DNA of 50,873 bases, taken from positions 1 through 50,873 of the forward strand of contig JAAPAO010000224.1 of NCBI GenBank assembly GCA_013115145.1. Direction: 5' to 3'. This document shows, in pieces, positions 16,511 through 37,906 of this stretch (position 1 is the stretch's first letter; the number at the start of each line of letters is the position of its first letter). This stretch comes from Perkinsus chesapeaki ATCC PRA-425. Its lineage: Eukaryota > Protista > Perkinsozoa. The translations under genes and the position numbers were made by a program. The notes under the pieces were generated by a model that worked only from the letters and a program-made list of their open reading frames with translations, had not been told where the DNA came from and did no database searches.

Positions 16511-17769
16511 TCAGCGATCCAACTTCAAACTATCTCTTACCTGATCAAGATTCACTACCCAAATATATCATTGCCGAACACTAAATGAAGAATGTATCAT
16601 ATATATATTAACCTCTCCAACAGTATATAATAAAGTATTTCCTGTATTATTCCTCCAGTATGAAAAACTAAATCGTAATTTAACTCATGATACAGCTTTT
16701 ACAGTATATAAGATAATTCTTTCATTAATTATTACACATTCATTTCGTAAATGATCATCATCATCACATAGCCCCTTCCCCTTTCATCATCCAACTATTA
16801 CCTCCATTATAATCTTTCCAAGGTTATTCCTGCCTTTTCCACTCCGCAAAGATACCCCCCAAAAATTATCATTCCAACTATTCCCTTCAACCAATTCTCG
16901 TTCACCTGTAGCCTTCAATTTATCCCTCAATTCCTCGGACCCTTGTGTGAATTTTGCCTCGATAACTTCCCGCATCACATCAACTCTTATAGCGTCCCAC
17001 CCTGCCCTCAAAGGGCCAACCCGTCTTCCCCAGGCTTTAGCCTGACAGAAAGGGGAAAAGTAGAAATTCAAAACAGTAGGAATGTTTTGTATACCAGCTC
17101 AGACTTTAGCCGCGACATTGCAAGAACAACCATTATTGGTCTAAGACATCATCATCATCATCACCCTTTTACAGTTAAGCATATCCTATTGGCTAGTAGT
17201 TCGAATATGCCCCTATTACTTCAACCAACTTTACTAATCACAACAACAACACACCCTTCACGAATATTTATTATATTATTTTCAACGCAATGATAGTGTT
17301 GAAATTTCCCTAATTCCCTAATTTAATTTCCTATCAGGATAGCAATCACATAACGCAATAACTGAGGAATGCAAATATGCAATATTACACTTGCCGCTCT
17401 TCAAATCATTTATCGAGAATCATTCGGAGATGTTGCCAAGATACCACACCGCTGCTGCCTTGGAACCATAAAACGCTTGCCCCGTCAGTCTCCCAGGCGA
17501 GCCCCCCTTCCCCGTATACTATTACCGATGCTGGAGTGTCGCATGTTTTAACCATCCTTTTTCGTTCTTCAATATCGAGAATTTTCTGAGCTTGGAAAGC
17601 ATGCTCACCAGTTGGGTATAAAATACCTGCTCGACTGCAGTAATTTCGCGGCGTGTGACGCAATACTCCTACCGTCTTTCATTTTGACTGGATATGGACT
17701 GAAGTTTGATAGAAAATAAAACTCTCCACGGAAAGTTGTGATTGCGTCTGATGAAGCTCGGGGAATCAT
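16511..17769 (-). CDS. NADAR / YbiA-family protein, 4 exons
   Basis: Spliced product ITTFRGEFYFLSNFSPYPV..|GILYPTGEHAFQAQK..PAS|AKAWGR..KFTQ..LVEGNSWNDNFWGV..GKGRNNLGKIIME|VRDSL carries the NADAR motifs. Start codon provisional. Confidence 0.9.
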
Positions 17770-17793
17770 CGGAAAAACGATGAGCAAGTTGAG

Positions 17794-18569: not shown

Positions 18570-21500
18570 TTACCAGCTCTTCGCATGGTAGATAGTAAAG
18601 GTAGGTGTGAACCCTCCAGTAAGCGTTGACCTTCTCATCGAAGGTAGACTATTAATCTTTATTTCCTCCGACCCTCCTATCTCAACATCACCATCGTCAC
18701 ATCTCGGTCTTGTCGGATCACTAAGATTCTCTACATCCAAATCAATAGGAAATATCCTATCAATAAGCCTCGAGAAAGCTCCTCTCTTTTCCTTCGGCAA
18801 TACCGGATAATATAAAGCCATACATACAGCCAAGTGAATCACACACAACGGTATGAGCGATAATGGATGGGCCTCGCTGACCAGCTCCACACAAACGTTA
18901 AAGATGGACCAGAACGCTACAAATACAAAAAACACAATCCTTCTACCCACAGTTGACGTTTTCTCAACGGCTCTCGCTCCAGTAAGGATAATAAATATAT
19001 AAAGTGGCATTCTAGTGAAGGCTAATAGAACTTGTGGAAGGAAACATATTAAGGCCCAAAGGGGACCCCAGAAGATGGCATCCGGAGCAATGAAACATAC
19101 TGCTAGGTTTATATAGACCGTTGATAATAGAATAACCTAAAAGGAGAAAATTAGTGAAAGTAGTTAAAATAAAAAATGATATAATACGCTAAAATAACTA
19201 AATACACTGTAATATACTATATAGTATTCAATAATAGTATATAATATATAGTATATACCTTTATACTACTATTAATAATATACACTATGAGGACCTTTAT
19301 AATACAGTCCTCCAAACTAACTTAGAATATCACGTTTTTGTGACTATTCTCTGCCAGATTTGCGACTCTATGCCCAAAACTCAGAGAGCCTCGTTCTAAC
19401 ATAGCCTTCAATATACCACCGAAGTTTCAGCGCCTAACACTCACTGGTTATTGAGAACTGAGGAATCGGCACGGAAAAGTTGCCAAATTGACTTAGAATA
19501 CACACCTTAATTTTGGTCCAAAAATCACGATTTTTCTTAAGGAAGTACCTCGAGATAGAACAGTTCGATTATAACTCTCGTAGTACTTGAAACCTATCAT
19601 ATACGGTGCTCACCCCTTAAAGTTTCATTGAGCAGTCGGAAGTAGTTGAGGATAATACTAATAATATACACTATAAGGACCTTTATAAAACTATTAATAA
19701 TATACACTATAAGAAGCTTTATAATACTATCAATAATAGTCTATTAATAGTATACACTATAAGGGCCCTTCCCATACTATTGTTCATACCGTTCCCTTAT
19801 TATTACGTATTTAAATGGTATGGTACCCCTACGGATCCCCAATGCCTGTCTAGCTTCCCTTCCAACATCTGTTCTAACAATCCTTTCAAATGCCAGTAAA
19901 TCACCGTCATACATATCTGATATATTCTGCATCACATACCTAATAACAACAACAAATCGTCACTGCGCCACAAAAATAAACACTTACTCTCGATCACTCT
20001 CTACTGTACACTTTGTGTTGTCCATTTCAAAAGTTTTGATTTGATTTACCAGCGCGTCTGAGTCTTGAACGTATCTCAACGCAAATGGACATAACACTGC
20101 CGCGAGTAGCAACCCTTCTGGTATGGCACAGATAAATCTAGCTTTAAGACTGGCACTGAATGACCCGACGAATGCCTGAACAAAAACGCGCTAAGGAATG
20201 GGACACTTTCAGGGGAGGGAGGTCGAAGCGGATATCAACAGTCCATATTATTAGATAGACCTTACGTATACGATTATTATTACATAACCCCAAGAAGACT
20301 AACGAGGCCTTCACAATTTGAAGCGAAAACACAAAAAGAAAGGACTTAGTAAATCTGTGCGAACCAAGTACCAATAAAGATATGCATCAAGGTAGAATAT
20401 ATGATATACAACAAAGCATTGATCATGTTGGTAATTTAGACGTTCACAGGTGGTGAAGCATAAGTCTAAATGTTACTCGGTATACAGGTTGATATGTGGA
20501 TAATTATAGCCCTTATTGTTATTACCACTTCAACGCTTAATAAAACGTTGCCAAAGAATCCCACCAATGTAAAGGCAAATACGAATTTAAGTAATGGTAG
20601 AGAAACAAATTGAACTTTATCAGTCCAATTGCTACCAAACATGAACCTAATAATACACAGATAAATAACACATCATTCATACACTAACGTTAGTAGCACG
20701 AAATCCTAGAAGGCAGTAAAGTCTTTGAAGGCCGTCCAGCTTGATGGTTTCCGGCAAAGCTCCCCATCTCATCGACGGGTATGAATTAGTTAGATTTCAA
20801 ACTAACGGAGATGCAGAAATCACGGACATTTCCCAACCAACCCCTCCACCACCGCCTGGTAATGAGTCAAGTGATTACTTCCTCCTTTCCCCGTCCCTTT
20901 TATTACTCTCGTATTCCTTTTGCAATCCTACAAAACTGCTCTCCGCAAGCATTAGATGAGACTTGGCTTTCAGCAGCAGCAACACGTCTGCCGACTGCTT
21001 TTTTATAGCTCATGAATGCAGCCAACTCATAGACGCACCAAAGACGCTCAAAATAGCAATTGGACCACATAACAATCATTGAGGATGACCGAGACAAGCA
21101 TGAACCAAGGGAACGGATGCCAACCTCCTTCATTACAGGCTAATCAAAATATACAATCAATAATTATAGAACTGATGATATCATCATTCAACTCTGGCTT
21201 ATATTTCAAGTGATATATGATGTTAGGGGCGGCGCCTCTATCATAACAAATAACTAACAACATGACTTCCCTTTATAGTATACATTCCATTATACTTGCT
21301 AATCGTTCCTCTTTGCTTTAACCACCCCTTTACCTCATAATGCTATCTATCCAACCCTTATTACATCATCCTGTGGTATACAACAATTATCCACAAATAG
21401 TTTATAACTGCTCCTGGCTAACTGGACATTTGGTAATAGAAGTATGATTACAAATACACCAGTACCTACCAATAACCACCAGCAGAATAAGATACTTCAT

Positions 21501-22688
21501 AACATTCTATTTCTAATAACACTGATAATAATAATAAGAAAAGCACGACGGTCTTGTGTGTTTTTAATGCAGAAAGAAGCGGTTGAAAAACTTCTATTAC
21601 TTAGCCAATTTTTGTTATAAAGTACTAAAATTCATCTGCATTTTCACACAGGAGTTTTCCATATAGCAAATCAGTAAAGTGTGATTCTGTTAGTAACTTA
21701 TTTCTCCACGTTACTTGGATACCGCACCAATGCCCAGGAGGTATCCCTCGAATGTAAGTATGATGATAACTAATGTCATTTAAGAGCATAATACTCTACT
21801 ATAATACAATGACTACCTCCTCCCATTATTACTAATACAAGCTAATAAATGAGCAGTTGGTATGTTATCTTCATCATATACACTTTGGTAATAATAAACA
21901 TACAAAACTATCAATACTTCAATTATTGCTGTTAATATAGCCAACCAAGATGCTCTTTGATAATTAAATATATAGCACAATGACAGGACTCTGAAAAAAG
22001 GGAAATCCTGCAATCTCAACAGAACATCTTTGAATCAACATGGCTCAATCGCCTAACCATCGCCAAATGCTCCTACACACGCAATACACAAGATTTACCA
22101 AGTTTAATAGCGTCGGTCATAAAGTAAGTTTACGGCAAGCGCAAGGGTGAGAGTGCATCCAACTATTCCTCCTATAGTTCACTACCGCCGAATTAGCCCC
22201 CCCAGCTCGTAGTTATAAACCTACACTGGTGAACATGATCATATTAATAACGTATACAATGTGATGCCCAGTAACCCTCTTATTATTATTACTTCTCCCA
22301 CCATGGAGCACTCCACGAATGGCTGACAAAAAAGTCTAGATGGGCGACATTAACGGAATTGGAGTATCCCTTCCGTATCGAGTGGGCGGCATCACCACCT
22401 TGATTAAAGGGGTTTCCTAAACCAGGATTTGAACCCGAGTCGTCTGCATTAAAGCCCACCTATCCATCTCATTAGTCTGTTGGCAGGTACCCCTCTCAGT
22501 GCTAAACTCCAGGAATCGTCCCCGTCAGCCAGCTCAACAGCAGCAGCAGCACCCGATCCCTCTATACCAGATGGTACCGTCATTTCTGATACCATTATTT
22601 TCCGAGTTCCCAAGCGACCCAAATTACCTTCGCCATTTGCGTTTTCCGGTTCTCCTTTTTCTGGTACTTCAATCACATTCGCTGCCAT
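18570..22688 (-). CDS. Multi-pass membrane protein with split TIR/HET-like domain, many exons
   Basis: LDFFVSHSWSAPWWEK|VLSLCYIFN, then hydrophobic helices, LFVDNCCIPQDD, GIRSLGSCLSRSSSMIVMWSNCYFERLWCVYELAAF, then further hydrophobic exons. Confidence 0.75.
19269..19770 (+). repeat. AT-rich ~36-bp minisatellite (4 copies) interrupted by a ~350-bp insert, intronic
   Basis: Unit ctattaataatatacactataaggacctttataata at about 19269, 19658, 19691 and 19741. Confidence 0.8.
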
Positions 22689-26882: not shown

Positions 26883-28097
26883 ATGTCTGATAGCGCTTAC
26901 AACTTTTTCTTCTCTGCCCCCAAGGTAGAGCTGCACATCCACTTTGATGGAGCCTTCGACATGGACCTCCTCTACGAGATTGCTAAGCGTGATCTCGATC
27001 AGCTCCCGGAGACCGTCCCCGCCCCCTGGAACGGCCCCGATGCTACCATTGCCGTCCGCTCTGCTATCGCCGCTTGTAAGAACAAAGAGGACTTTAAGAA
27101 GATAACTTGTCTCGGCCCTGAAGCTGTGGTCTCCAAGCGTTTGCAAACTGGCCAGAAGGGCGCTGGTCTAGCCTGTATGCTTGATTGTTTCGCTATCTTA
27201 ACTCCTGTCGTACAAGGCAAGCGGGACGTCATGGAGGAGATGGCCTTCAAGGTCTGTGAACGTCAGTATCGTGAAAACGTTGTTTACACTGAACTTCGAT
27301 ACAACCCCCATGTGTTAGCTCTCGAGGGTTCTACTCTTCCCGATGCTAGAAGTGTCGTTGAGGCCGTTACTGCTGGTATCGAGCGTGGCAAGAAGGTATT
27401 CGGTATCGATATGAATCAGATCCTATGCTGCATGAATTTGATGCCAGAAGTAAGTGCTGAAGTTGCTCAGCTCGCCATCGAGTTCAAGTCCAAGGGCGTT
27501 GTTGCTATTGATGTCGCTGCTGGCGAGAACCATTTCGAAAATGAAGACCTGAAAAAGGCACACGTTGCCGCTTGCTTGGAGGCTGAGAAGGCCGGTCTGC
27601 GAGTCACTGTACATGGTGCTGAAGACGGTTCTTCAAAGAATTTCTGTTGTGCTGTTCGCGAGTATCACGCCGAGCGTGTTGGTCACGCCTACAAGATCGC
27701 GTCTGACCCGGAGATGTATAAAATGGCTCAAGAGACTCATACCCACATCGAAGCCTGTCCTACTTCTAGCATTTGCACTGAGGCAGTCTGCCTTCCACAG
27801 ATCCATCCTGAGAAGCCTATCCTCGATAGTTTGGATTGGAATAAGCATCCTATTAAGAAGTTTATTGAAGACGGTTTGAGTGTTAGTATCAGTACCGACG
27901 ACCCGACCGTATTTTTAACTCACATCACTGACGAGCTCACAATCCTGGCTGACCGTTTCGGATTTGATGCTCACGAAGTTGGTATGCAAGTGACGATGAA
28001 CGCCATTGACAGGTGCTGGGCGACCGATAAGGAAAAGTCGAAGTATCGCGAGGCGGCCGTCGCTTATTATAAAGGTGCGGAGTCGACCCGCCAGTAG
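26883..28097 (+). CDS. ADA: Adenosine deaminase, copy 1, intronless
   Basis: VELHIHFDG, YTELRYNP, TVHGAE, RVGHA, EACPTSS, STDDP; full metal and catalytic residue set. Confidence 0.93.
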   Translation: MSDSAYNFFFSAPKVELHIHFDGAFDMDLLYEIAKRDLDQLPETVPAPWNGPDATIAVRSAIAACKNKEDFKKITCLGPEAVVSKRLQTGQKGAGLACMLDCFAILTPVVQGKRDVMEEMAFKVCERQYRENVVYTELRYNPHVLALEGSTLPDARSVVEAVTAGIERGKKVFGIDMNQILCCMNLMPEVSAEVAQLAIEFKSKGVVAIDVAAGENHFENEDLKKAHVAACLEAEKAGLRVTVHGAEDGSSKNFCCAVREYHAERVGHAYKIASDPEMYKMAQETHTHIEACPTSSICTEAVCLPQIHPEKPILDSLDWNKHPIKKFIEDGLSVSISTDDPTVFLTHITDELTILADRFGFDAHEVGMQVTMNAIDRCWATDKEKSKYREAAVAYYKGAESTRQ

Positions 28098-34991: not shown

Positions 34992-37906
34992 TCAGACATT
35001 CCTCGGAGATGGAAAGCAGTTTCTGACGTACCGCAGTAGGGCATTCGCATACCACAGCTCCTCATCAAGTGCCTGACATAATCGTATTAGGAAGGTGTTA
35101 CTCAATAGCGGGGGACGGCTCACCGCCACAAACACAGACGGCTGAGGCTTCACGTCGTCACCAAGTATCTTTCCATAAACTGCTTTCTGCCTCGATTCGA
35201 CCCTCGACGCCAAACATCGGAATCTCTCACGAGCACTCCCCAATGCGGTTTCTTCGCAGACGTTGTTATCATTATCATCCATCTTTGTTCCAGTATGTAT
35301 TCTCATTGCTCGTATGGCGATATCCTGACGAGCTTAAGCCTCGGGTGCGTTCGAACATGACACGTGACTACCTCGGCTTCAGCCTCTACTGCGGTGTAAA
35401 ATGCCCCACCTGCTGCCGAGAGCTCGCTACCAGCGACCGACCACATTGCTTTCCACTGCCAGTCGCTGTCCCCTGCATCCGTCGTGCAACCGTCGCCGCA
35501 TTCTCGGAGCATTTTGATATTAAGAGCCAATGACGTAACAAGAGCACACTGCTCCACATTGGTGAGGATGCTAGGCACCGGTATCGTCTCTAGATTGGGA
35601 GGTGGACACAAAACGAATGCCTGAGGCGGCCCATGACTTACCAAAAAGGTAATTGTATAAATACCTCAAGTTCAGGGTTGATGAGCAATTTCAAGGAATG
35701 GTTGAGGTGCATCCCGCCAGAAGGAACGGCCACCTCGAGCGGGCTACTCTGTACGTGACAAGGCAGCAGCCAGCATCGCAATACATCTTCTTGGATCACT
35801 TCATTCCCATCTTCAGATATCCACCACACCTTCGCTTTAACTACCACTCGTCGTGGGCGGAAATGTTGCTCGAACGGTGGCAGTTTAGGAGTGTCGTTTG
35901 GTGTTCCCTCCAACCAAGGTGGACGTGATGATATCACACAAGACGTCTCCAACTGCCACATTCTTAACCTGTAACCATCGTCGACCTCTTCAACCGTCGA
36001 ACACACTATTGGAAGGCCTGGTTCTCTCAACCATGCGTCCATCCAACCAGCGATCTCGGTAGTTTCCAGCCCAGCAGCGTCTGCCATCGCTCGCCACAGA
36101 TCGGATTTAGTGTACGTGGACTGATTGTGACGCTCAAGAAGTATCCCTGAGGAAATCGCTCAAGAAACCAGTTCGTTGGCAGCAGTGGTTACGAAGGCCT
36201 CGAATGAAGTTGTCATGCCCAACGGCACCGCGGAGCATCCGTAGTACGCAGGCTCCTTTGCCATAGGCAATATTATCAAACAGAACTTCACAGTCTTCGG
36301 CTGGATGCTGCTGCTGCTGCCCTCCTCCAGTTGTTGGCCTATCACAGTTATATTCTATCGGATGCGATCCTGAGAAAGACATGGCGGGAGAGAGTGTGAT
36401 TCGTGTGGTACTCGAGGGTGAGGCGTCGGCGAGCATGGCATCAAATTGCACCTCTGTGAGAAAGTGTTCCCAAACGCGGTCCCCCAGGCATTGGTTCAAC
36501 CTGACAACGATCGCTATTGACCTGTTTACCTTACCAAACAGATGGCCCTACCCCTCCGATTCCATCCAACCTGCCGCGGATGGCTCCTTATTTGGCATCA
36601 AGTCACACATTACAAACTCTAACAACCTGGCCATACCCTCTTTAAGCCAAAGGTCCGCGAAGCTCTCTGGCGTACACATATCTCCGAACCACATGTGAGA
36701 TACTTCATGGCACATCAATCTAACGACCCTTCGCCGCCTCGAAATGAGCTCAGTAAACAACTTCAGCTCTTGCTGGGTCTCCACTGCTTTTCGGTGAACT
36801 TTCCGTCGACACTCTTCCAGCATTCCCAGTGCACTTGGTATGCTGGGAACCATGCAGTATGTGTCCTTCACGGAAATGCAACCAAATGTCTCGAGGCCGA
36901 GCCCACGGTGATGGGGAAGGGCCACTATTCTCAATCTGTCCGGTAGAGCAGGGTAGGGAGCGATGGACCCAAACCATTCGGTCATCTGCTCGAAGGCAAA
37001 CTGCGCGGCATGACCGGCGACCGTGGGGGTCAGCTCCTGGACATTTCGTTTTTGTCTCTGTCGTTTGTCGGGCAGCTCTAGAGTGGATGAATCGGAGAAG
37101 CTGCTGTGCTGTTCTCGAGGGAAATAACAAATGCTGACTTGGGAGCCGAAGTCGTGTTCCGAGAATTGACCGATGAAGATCCCAACCGCATAAGTTGGCA
37201 AACGCACATCTTGAGGCGTTCGAAATTCAATCCAATCACCACTGCTTGCTGCTGCTGGCTTTCGCTCACTTATCGATATCGCTCTCATGTGCTCACCCGT
37301 GGAACACCTCACCGCAAAGGACGCTTTAAATGCGGGGTCATCTACACATGGGAAGACTCTTCTAGCATGTCGAGGCTCGAGACTGGTCCCTATATACATG
37401 TCATCTACAGGCACTCTACACGCGATATGTGACCCCTCCGTATCGCCGGCATCGAGGGTGCTAACCTGTCCAACATCATTACAGTTTCCGGCGAAGAGGC
37501 CTCTTGGAGCGATGATACCATGCCGCGAATGACCACACACTATCAACTGCCCAACATATTCGATATCAACCTCTACAGTCTCTCGATCAGTGCCCGCTTC
37601 AATGACTACAAGACCATGGTCAACCCAGTACCGCCGAGCTGGCAGGCCATCAACCCTCAAGAATGATATTTTTAGACCAACGGCATGCAATGAAATGAGC
37701 TTCCCTTCCCCAGTTATCCTCTTTAGTTTTATCAAAGTTCGCCCTGCGAAAGTTCCTATTTCACAGTTGAAATCCCTCAGAGTTATATCGTATTCAAGCG
37801 GGGCGTATTTCGACCCTGGACGGCCCGCCTCCAGCCAGATGGTGTCATCTAATGTACCTGCTACTGGCTCACCATTCGTATGATCGTGATAGGAGTTGGC
37901 GGTCAT
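34992..37906 (-). CDS. M1-family zinc aminopeptidase with atypical GAMEN motif; 3' end approximate
   Basis: EPRHARRVFPCVDDPAFKASF, HEVSHMWFG..LWLKEG (HExxH-x18-E), FDNIAYGKGACVLRML, WMDAWLREPGLPIV. Confidence 0.9.

Follow-up and report, generated by a model that had tools for sequence, protein, structure and literature searches.

The 50.9-kb stretch of Perkinsus chesapeaki DNA analysed here (the window) carries on its minus strand, from an ATG at 22688 to a stop codon that ends at 18570, a coding region of nine exons and eight GT..AG introns whose joined exons (1854 nt, 617 amino acids) contain no internal stop. This is an intact, spliced, conserved and, to judge by public contigs, transcribed gene. 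We consider it slightly better than an even chance that it encodes an eight-transmembrane protein in which three soluble stretches come together as one TIR-fold domain, the whole being likely a membrane-anchored TIR enzyme. TIR domains are NAD-cleaving alarm enzymes common to bacterial, plant and animal immunity, and to our knowledge all of those described are contiguous and soluble.

The introns were chosen by enumerating frame-keeping GT..AG pairs and scoring each with a hidden Markov model (HMM) of the family, built from paralogues, and splice joints were sought in contigs of two small public runs (X1 and X2) that bear the same species label and whose RNA nature is a guess on our part; none of the runs listed was recorded as RNA. 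The resulting gene is laid out as follows.

18570-22688, minus strand: whole coding region, supported by the open spliced frame, the collinear HMM matches and the Perkinsus olseni orthologue P0033
22460-22688, minus strand: exon 1, an N-terminal soluble region that contains the family's LRGVP motif at 22499-22485, supported by the intron 1 joint
22459-22417, minus strand: intron 1, 43 nt, with its joint in X2
22293-22416, minus strand: exon 2, β-A of the TIR-like domain, with DFFVSHSW at 22336-22313 (HMM 5e-8)
22292-21991, minus strand: intron 2, 302 nt, with its joint in X1 and X2
21833-21990, minus strand: exon 3, the first transmembrane helix (21953-21888) plus the beginning of the second, from hydropathy; the junction agrees with the P. 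olseni model
21365-21465, minus strand: exon 4, the end of helix 2, β-B and the BB loop, with FVDNCCIPQ at 21397-21371 (HMM 1.2e-5)
20907-21139, minus strand: exon 5, α-B, β-C (MIVMWS), α-C with RLWCVYELAAF (21046-21014) and the start of an insert (HMM 5.5e-20)
21026-21028, minus strand: codon of Glu242 (E242), at the catalytic-Glu position of TIR NADases, aligned with the WCLDE Glu of the RPV1 and RPP1 TIRs
20906-20647, minus strand: intron 5, 260 nt, with its joint in X1
20526-20646, minus strand: exon 6, the end of the insert, β-D (KVQFVS, 20618-20601) and transmembrane helix 3 (20606-20538), from alignment and hydropathy
19988-20175, minus strand: exon 7, helix 4 (20145-20077), β-E and the start of α-E with an invariant Cys and Asp (HMM 2.1e-5)
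19987-19940, minus strand: intron 7, 48 nt, with its joint in a 100%-identical contig
19807-19939, minus strand: exon 8, the α-E block MYDG..AFE, equivalent to the family WYGS..F motif (HMM 0.004, alignment)
19806-19137, minus strand: intron 8, 670 nt
18570-19136, minus strand: exon 9, helices 5-8 (to about 18795) and a 74-residue charged tail ending in YHAKSW, from hydropathy; conserved in P. olseni

The range proposed by an earlier, sequence-only reading of this DNA is exactly the coding sequence. The three motifs on which that reading was based lie on the minus strand where it had put them (DFFVSHSW, FVDNCCIPQ and ...MIVMWSNCYFERLWCVYELAAF, the last with its Glu codon at 21028-21026), with hydrophobic stretches between and beyond them by hydropathy. 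It overlooked exons 7 and 8 (20175-19988 and 19939-19807), where the final conserved block of the domain is encoded. The HMM matches the open reading frames of exons 2, 4, 5, 7 and 8 in collinear order, indicating that the order of the motifs is not a chance pattern.

Exact GT..AG joints for introns 1, 2, 5 and 7 occur in contigs of X1 and X2, and one of the joint-bearing contigs, that for intron 7, is 100% identical to the window. Because a search of the genome found no intron-less copy (retrocopy) of the gene, spliced RNA is the simplest source of these joints. An alternative intron 5 (20985-20615), which the family HMM preferred, is contradicted by a spliced contig.

The best representative match, P0033, is the P. 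olseni protein KAF4686949.1. Its annotated junctions coincide with window introns 1, 2, 3, 4, 6 and 7; the annotation reads through intron 5 and ends inside intron 8. The un-annotated last exon is nevertheless conserved in the P. olseni contig (L014, 8640-9188), including the C-terminal YHA(K/R)SW. Over 425 aligned codons of the two orthologues, the proportion of nonsynonymous differences (pN, 0.17) is far below the saturated proportion of synonymous differences (pS, 0.82), indicating purifying selection. Intron lengths differ between the species: introns 2, 3, 4 and 6 measure about 27-80 nt in P. olseni (L014, 6001-9188) against 225-367 nt in the window, whereas for intron 7 the P. olseni length is about 290 nt and the window length 48 nt.

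If the locus were a pseudogene in decay, or merely motifs strung together by chance, the frame changes would be damage, and it is indeed the only member of its family in the genome to be interrupted by stops, the other 36 being intronless and in open frames. However, all eight interruptions are GT..AG and keep the frame, four of them have been removed by splicing in public contigs, the P. olseni annotation has six of the junctions as well, the last exon and C terminus are conserved, and pN lies far below pS. We give this explanation next to no chance.

The family to which the gene belongs is large. Translated exon 5 (78 amino acids), used as a query against the window's own 41.7-Mb assembly, finds at least 36 other genomic places, the paralogue count that the sequence-only reading had called for; all are uninterrupted open frames, mostly of 370-550 amino acids, and many stand in tandem arrays. 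A P. chesapeaki protein is 100% identical to one of them. No further member lies elsewhere in the window, and a genome search with exon 9 finds no paralogue. In a search of 1.84 billion proteins with exon 5 alone, HMMER retrieves 574 cluster representatives (E≤0.001). P. olseni, Perkinsus marinus and Symbiodinium species, together with dinoflagellate transcriptomes, supply the closest relatives, and feature and shape searches of the ESM Atlas add haptophyte-labelled clusters with TM-scores of 0.78-0.79 over 440-465 residues for the whole predicted shape. The family therefore has relatives in dinoflagellates and probably in haptophytes; a 72-sequence profile used in a word-based protein search added no taxa.

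Invariant across 72 diverse members are F and D in F.D, Q in CI.Q, the R.WC..E block and, past helix 4, a single Asp; F.SH.W, C-I, W..Y and a Cys are nearly so. The window domain retains every family-invariant residue, E242 among them. All blocks of the family order (F.SH.W, hairpin, F.D..CI.Q...W..Y..RLWC..E, hairpin, C....D...WYG..F, four helices) are present in the window protein, with MYDG in its lineage where the family has WYGS. Identity to other family members is only 20-26%. In a phylogenetic tree, P0033 and the window protein share a long branch (support 100) with P0060 as sister, outside the main intronless Perkinsus clade. The gene represents an old, conserved, single-copy, intron-bearing and divergent lineage of the family. 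Being a conserved single-copy orthologue outside the tandem arrays, it resembles a fast-evolving immune receptor less than the paralogues do. The Symbiodinium model P0190 fuses the family module to PI3K/FATC domains, and a haptophyte cluster of 774-residue proteins with a heme-NO-binding (HNOB) domain shows partial shape likeness (271 residues aligned). Either could represent a sensor fusion or an artefact of gene modelling.

Comparison of exon 5 with all PDB sequences gives only five matches, all of them to plant TIRs (RPV1, RPP1 and ADR2) and weak (E 0.24-1.3). These matches align β-C and α-C and set E242 on the WCLDE Glu. The α-C Glu is catalytic in plant TIR NADases. The claim that the WCxxE glutamate is retained is borne out both by this alignment and by the invariance of the residue in the 72 relatives. 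Among the same 72 members, Pfam TIR_2 matches 54 (best 3.4e-6), TIR 34 and HET 14 (best 0.0022), all weakly, and the relative P0025 bears a precomputed PF13676 match. The BB-loop block D..CI.Q is conserved. By these matches, the family is a far-diverged branch of the TIR/HET group, nearer to the TIR profiles and with a HET-like D..CI.Q block. The double likeness to TIR and HET seen in the sequence-only reading is therefore real in its HET flavour, with the HET side weaker than the TIR side.

The HET likeness raises the question of whether the protein is instead a membrane-tethered HET-type domain for cell death or allorecognition, serving self/non-self incompatibility or programmed death whatever its chemistry. 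D..CI.Q and SH.W are similar to HET blocks, the paralogues stand in tandem arrays as HET genes do, and 14 of the 72 members give the weak HET matches just cited. HET has also been discussed as a remote relative of TIR, with its activity not established (PMC10197012). On the other side, the TIR models match many more members, the HET model (PF06985) matches none of the window exons, the Atlas shape search brings up no HET family, and the window copy is single and conserved between species, neither polymorphic nor expanded. We regard a HET-type function as very unlikely.

To examine the fold, AlphaFold models of an intronless paralogue (frame L008) and of P. olseni P0033 were used. The paralogue model (496 amino acids, 72-row alignment) has a mean predicted local distance difference test score (pLDDT) of 88.7 and a predicted TM-score of 0.87; the P0033 model has a mean pLDDT of 73.9, with values above 85 outside the mis-annotated read-through. 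Compared with solved structures by VIA-align, the paralogue matches the RPP1 TIR (Z 8.6, 134 amino acids, root-mean-square deviation (rmsd) 3.9) and the SARM1 TIR (Z 8.5, 122 of 140 amino acids, rmsd 3.3). About 15 further TIR matches include IL-18R-β, SpbK, MyD88 (Z 7.3), RPS4, TRR-2, TIR-1, TIRAP, ThsB, MAL and TRAM. In the comparison with representatives, all of these TIR matches cover model residues ~60-347, across both inserted hairpins. For P0033, the RPP1 TIR is the top match overall (Z 7.9, 145 of 166 amino acids), and MyD88 (7.4), SARM1 (7.2) and RPS4 (7.1) also match. A flavodoxin-like fold in both models, five parallel strands with helices around them, can thus be superposed on known TIRs, covering 85-90% of each, and the TIR-like fold across transmembrane hairpins that the sequence-only reading had proposed is supported on these two predicted structures.

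In the paralogue model, β-A is followed by a long helix that continues as transmembrane helix 1, then by helix 2, β-B, α-B, β-C, α-C and β-D; after β-D come helices 3 and 4, β-E, α-E and four more helices. Hydropathy of the window protein places helices at about 131-152, 163-185, 296-318 and 333-355, with four more within 427-543; Pfam finds nothing on the window protein for the transmembrane helices. The eight helices form four hairpins with short outer loops, and, because they pair in this way, the N terminus, the loops at 189-291 and 357-424 and the tail should lie on one side of the membrane. An even number of helices separates the pieces of the domain, as hydropathy would have it for pieces on one membrane face, which is where the sequence-only reading had wanted them. 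This one-sided topology is consistent with the single-domain assembly in the models.

The same structural comparison also returns nucleoside 2-deoxyribosyltransferases (Z 5.7-6.3), and the helix bundle of the paralogue model is similar to membrane domains of APH-1 and ABCG type (Z 8-9), as would suit a flavodoxin-like domain with some other nucleotide or nucleoside chemistry, such as that of a nucleoside 2-deoxyribosyltransferase, or a regulator of an eight-helix transporter or channel. Helical-bundle matches at Z 8-9 are, however, expected by chance, and the TIR matches are more numerous, cover the domain more widely and are in line with the sequence motifs. Either of these alternatives seems to us decidedly unlikely.

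A further possibility is that the split TIR-fold domain lacks catalytic activity and serves as a scaffold that recruits partners by TIR-TIR contact, which would make the protein a receptor or adaptor with several membrane passes, comparable to animal TLR, MyD88 and IL-1R. The MyD88, IL-18R-β, IL-1RAcP, TIRAP and TRAM TIRs score close to the enzymatic TIRs, and the sole match of the family profile among PDB sequences, and so its best, is the IL1RAPL2 TIR (E 0.12). The Glu and the R.WC..E block are invariant across 72 very divergent sequences, though, an observation more in keeping with catalysis than with a contact surface; the best PDB matches of exon 5 are plant NADase TIRs, and we know of no MyD88-like partners in alveolates. 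A scaffold role is, on balance, unlikely.

Several observations weigh against the interpretation as a membrane-anchored TIR enzyme. The Pfam models fall short of their thresholds on window exon 5 (TIR, PF01582, 15.9 against 21.3 bits; TIR_2, PF13676, 14 against 28) and on five paralogues (at most 20.8 bits for TIR and TIR_2). The models are of stand-ins for the window protein, and one of these, P0033 at 483 amino acids, is an imperfectly annotated orthologue. Foldseek with the whole paralogue model finds nothing in the PDB at E≤0.001 and an RPP1 chain only at rank 26; because a split domain defeats Foldseek, VIA-align was needed, and its Z of 7-9 can be reached by unrelated best matches, with helical membrane proteins scoring alike. 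Since the Z values are middling, the case for the fold rests on the recurrence of TIR matches, the 85-90% coverage and the agreement with sequence. Most X1 and X2 contigs diverge by 5-10% from the window and, to judge by their differences, derive from a divergent allele or a close relative. A conserved Glu is by itself no proof of catalysis. The window lineage has, beside its 74-residue charged tail, a specific 42-residue insert between α-C and β-D.

Among known systems, the plant TIR NADases (RPP1, RPV1/RUN1 and RPS4; PDB 5teb, 5ku7 and 4c6t) are the best structural matches (Z 7.0-8.6 over 133-145 residues). They are contiguous and soluble, of about 170 amino acids, and either fused to NB-ARC-LRR or alone, whereas the window domain is cut twice by transmembrane hairpins and carries four more helices; identity between them and the window family is only 10-16%. 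The SARM1 TIR (PDB 9hq0) matches with Z 8.5 and 7.2 (rmsd 3.3-3.5, 121-122 of 140 residues), and the W-x-x-x-E spacing equals that at the SARM1 catalytic Glu. SARM1 is soluble or peripheral and under the control of ARM and SAM domains, which the window protein lacks. With HET (PF06985) the window family has in common a three-block pattern that includes a hydrophobic-D-x-x-C-I-x-Q block and a W...E block, and HET genes likewise form large expanded families. HET proteins are, however, soluble and fungal, and TIR profiles suit the window family better.

Toll-like receptors and bacterial TIR-transmembrane effectors have, like the window protein, a membrane anchor and a TIR on the inner face, but their helices lie outside an uninterrupted TIR, whereas in the window protein two hairpins are threaded through the fold. 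For the haptophyte Gephyrocapsa huxleyi, a 2025 paper that covers 15 genes reports TIR genes that respond to virus infection and keep the conserved Glu, some with several transmembrane helices (PMC12489294). The helices in these proteins are N-terminal to the TIR, and no split domain is described (PMC12489294). A full-text literature search found no account of a TIR domain split by transmembrane helices. What is new here is the predicted membrane-threaded architecture; the TIR domain itself is known.

A mechanism for a membrane-anchored TIR enzyme can be outlined from the models. The soluble stretches, namely β-A, the segment from β-B to β-D, and β-E with α-E, would pack into a single domain in which transmembrane hairpins stand in for the usual α-A and α-D connections. 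With E242 at the place of the catalytic Glu, the domain could cleave NAD(P)+ or transform it into ADP-ribose-type products, and the enzyme might be switched on by a change of shape or by clustering of the membrane bundle. Such a family would fit a role as sensor or signal generator. Cleavage of NAD(P)+ and control by the helix bundle are both steps that we infer by analogy. A membrane-threaded TIR fold in a large protist family would amount to a new coupling of TIR activity to a membrane event, and would open TIR signalling to experiment in alveolates (oyster parasites and coral symbionts) and in haptophyte algae. The window copy, single in its genome, conserved between Perkinsus species and spliced in public contigs, is a good entry point.

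The gene immediately downstream is of interest in the light of this putative chemistry.

16790-17793, minus strand: NADAR-domain gene, co-directional and about 0.8 kb downstream (PF08719, 9.9e-19, 68.6 bits, above cut-off)

The 41.7-Mb genome has no other NADAR match, and a NADAR neighbour also lies downstream of the P. olseni orthologue (L014, 11257-12041). A Hydrolase_3 gene follows in both species, so the synteny is wider. No NADAR gene accompanies the sister sequence P0060 on its contig, and the link thus lacks independent support. It is a lead, not a finding: the adjacency may reflect a functional tie to a NAD-cleaving TIR or simply retained synteny. That the two genes form a conserved NAD/ADP-ribose module, in which a membrane-gated split TIR would produce a signal or adduct derived from ADP-ribose, to be removed or processed by NADAR, strikes us as highly doubtful. 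If the link is real, it suggests a partner enzyme, and a two-gene module of this kind would give bacterial NAD-based conflict systems a counterpart in eukaryotes, at a membrane of an alveolate parasite.

The introns themselves have some further features. Six donors (22292, 21832, 21364, 20906, 20525 and 19806) read GTAATAA, accounting for six of the 11 such minus-strand sites in the window, and GTAATAA donors place stop codons directly 3' of the exon. We reject an introner origin, as the introns are mutually dissimilar (blastn, word size 7) and none but intron 8 recurs in the genome. Intron 8 contains the following element, found by genome search and by its flanking repeats.

19299-19655, no strand assigned: copy of a dispersed repeat of about 357 nt inside intron 8

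The repeat has at least 35 other genomic copies at 70-97% identity, is flanked by short repeats of 36-50 nt (19257-19305 and 19643-19777) and makes up much of the 670-nt intron.

Elsewhere in the window lie an adenosine deaminase gene on the plus strand (PF00962, 1.7e-60; 26883-28094) and an M1 aminopeptidase fragment on the minus strand (36551-37906).

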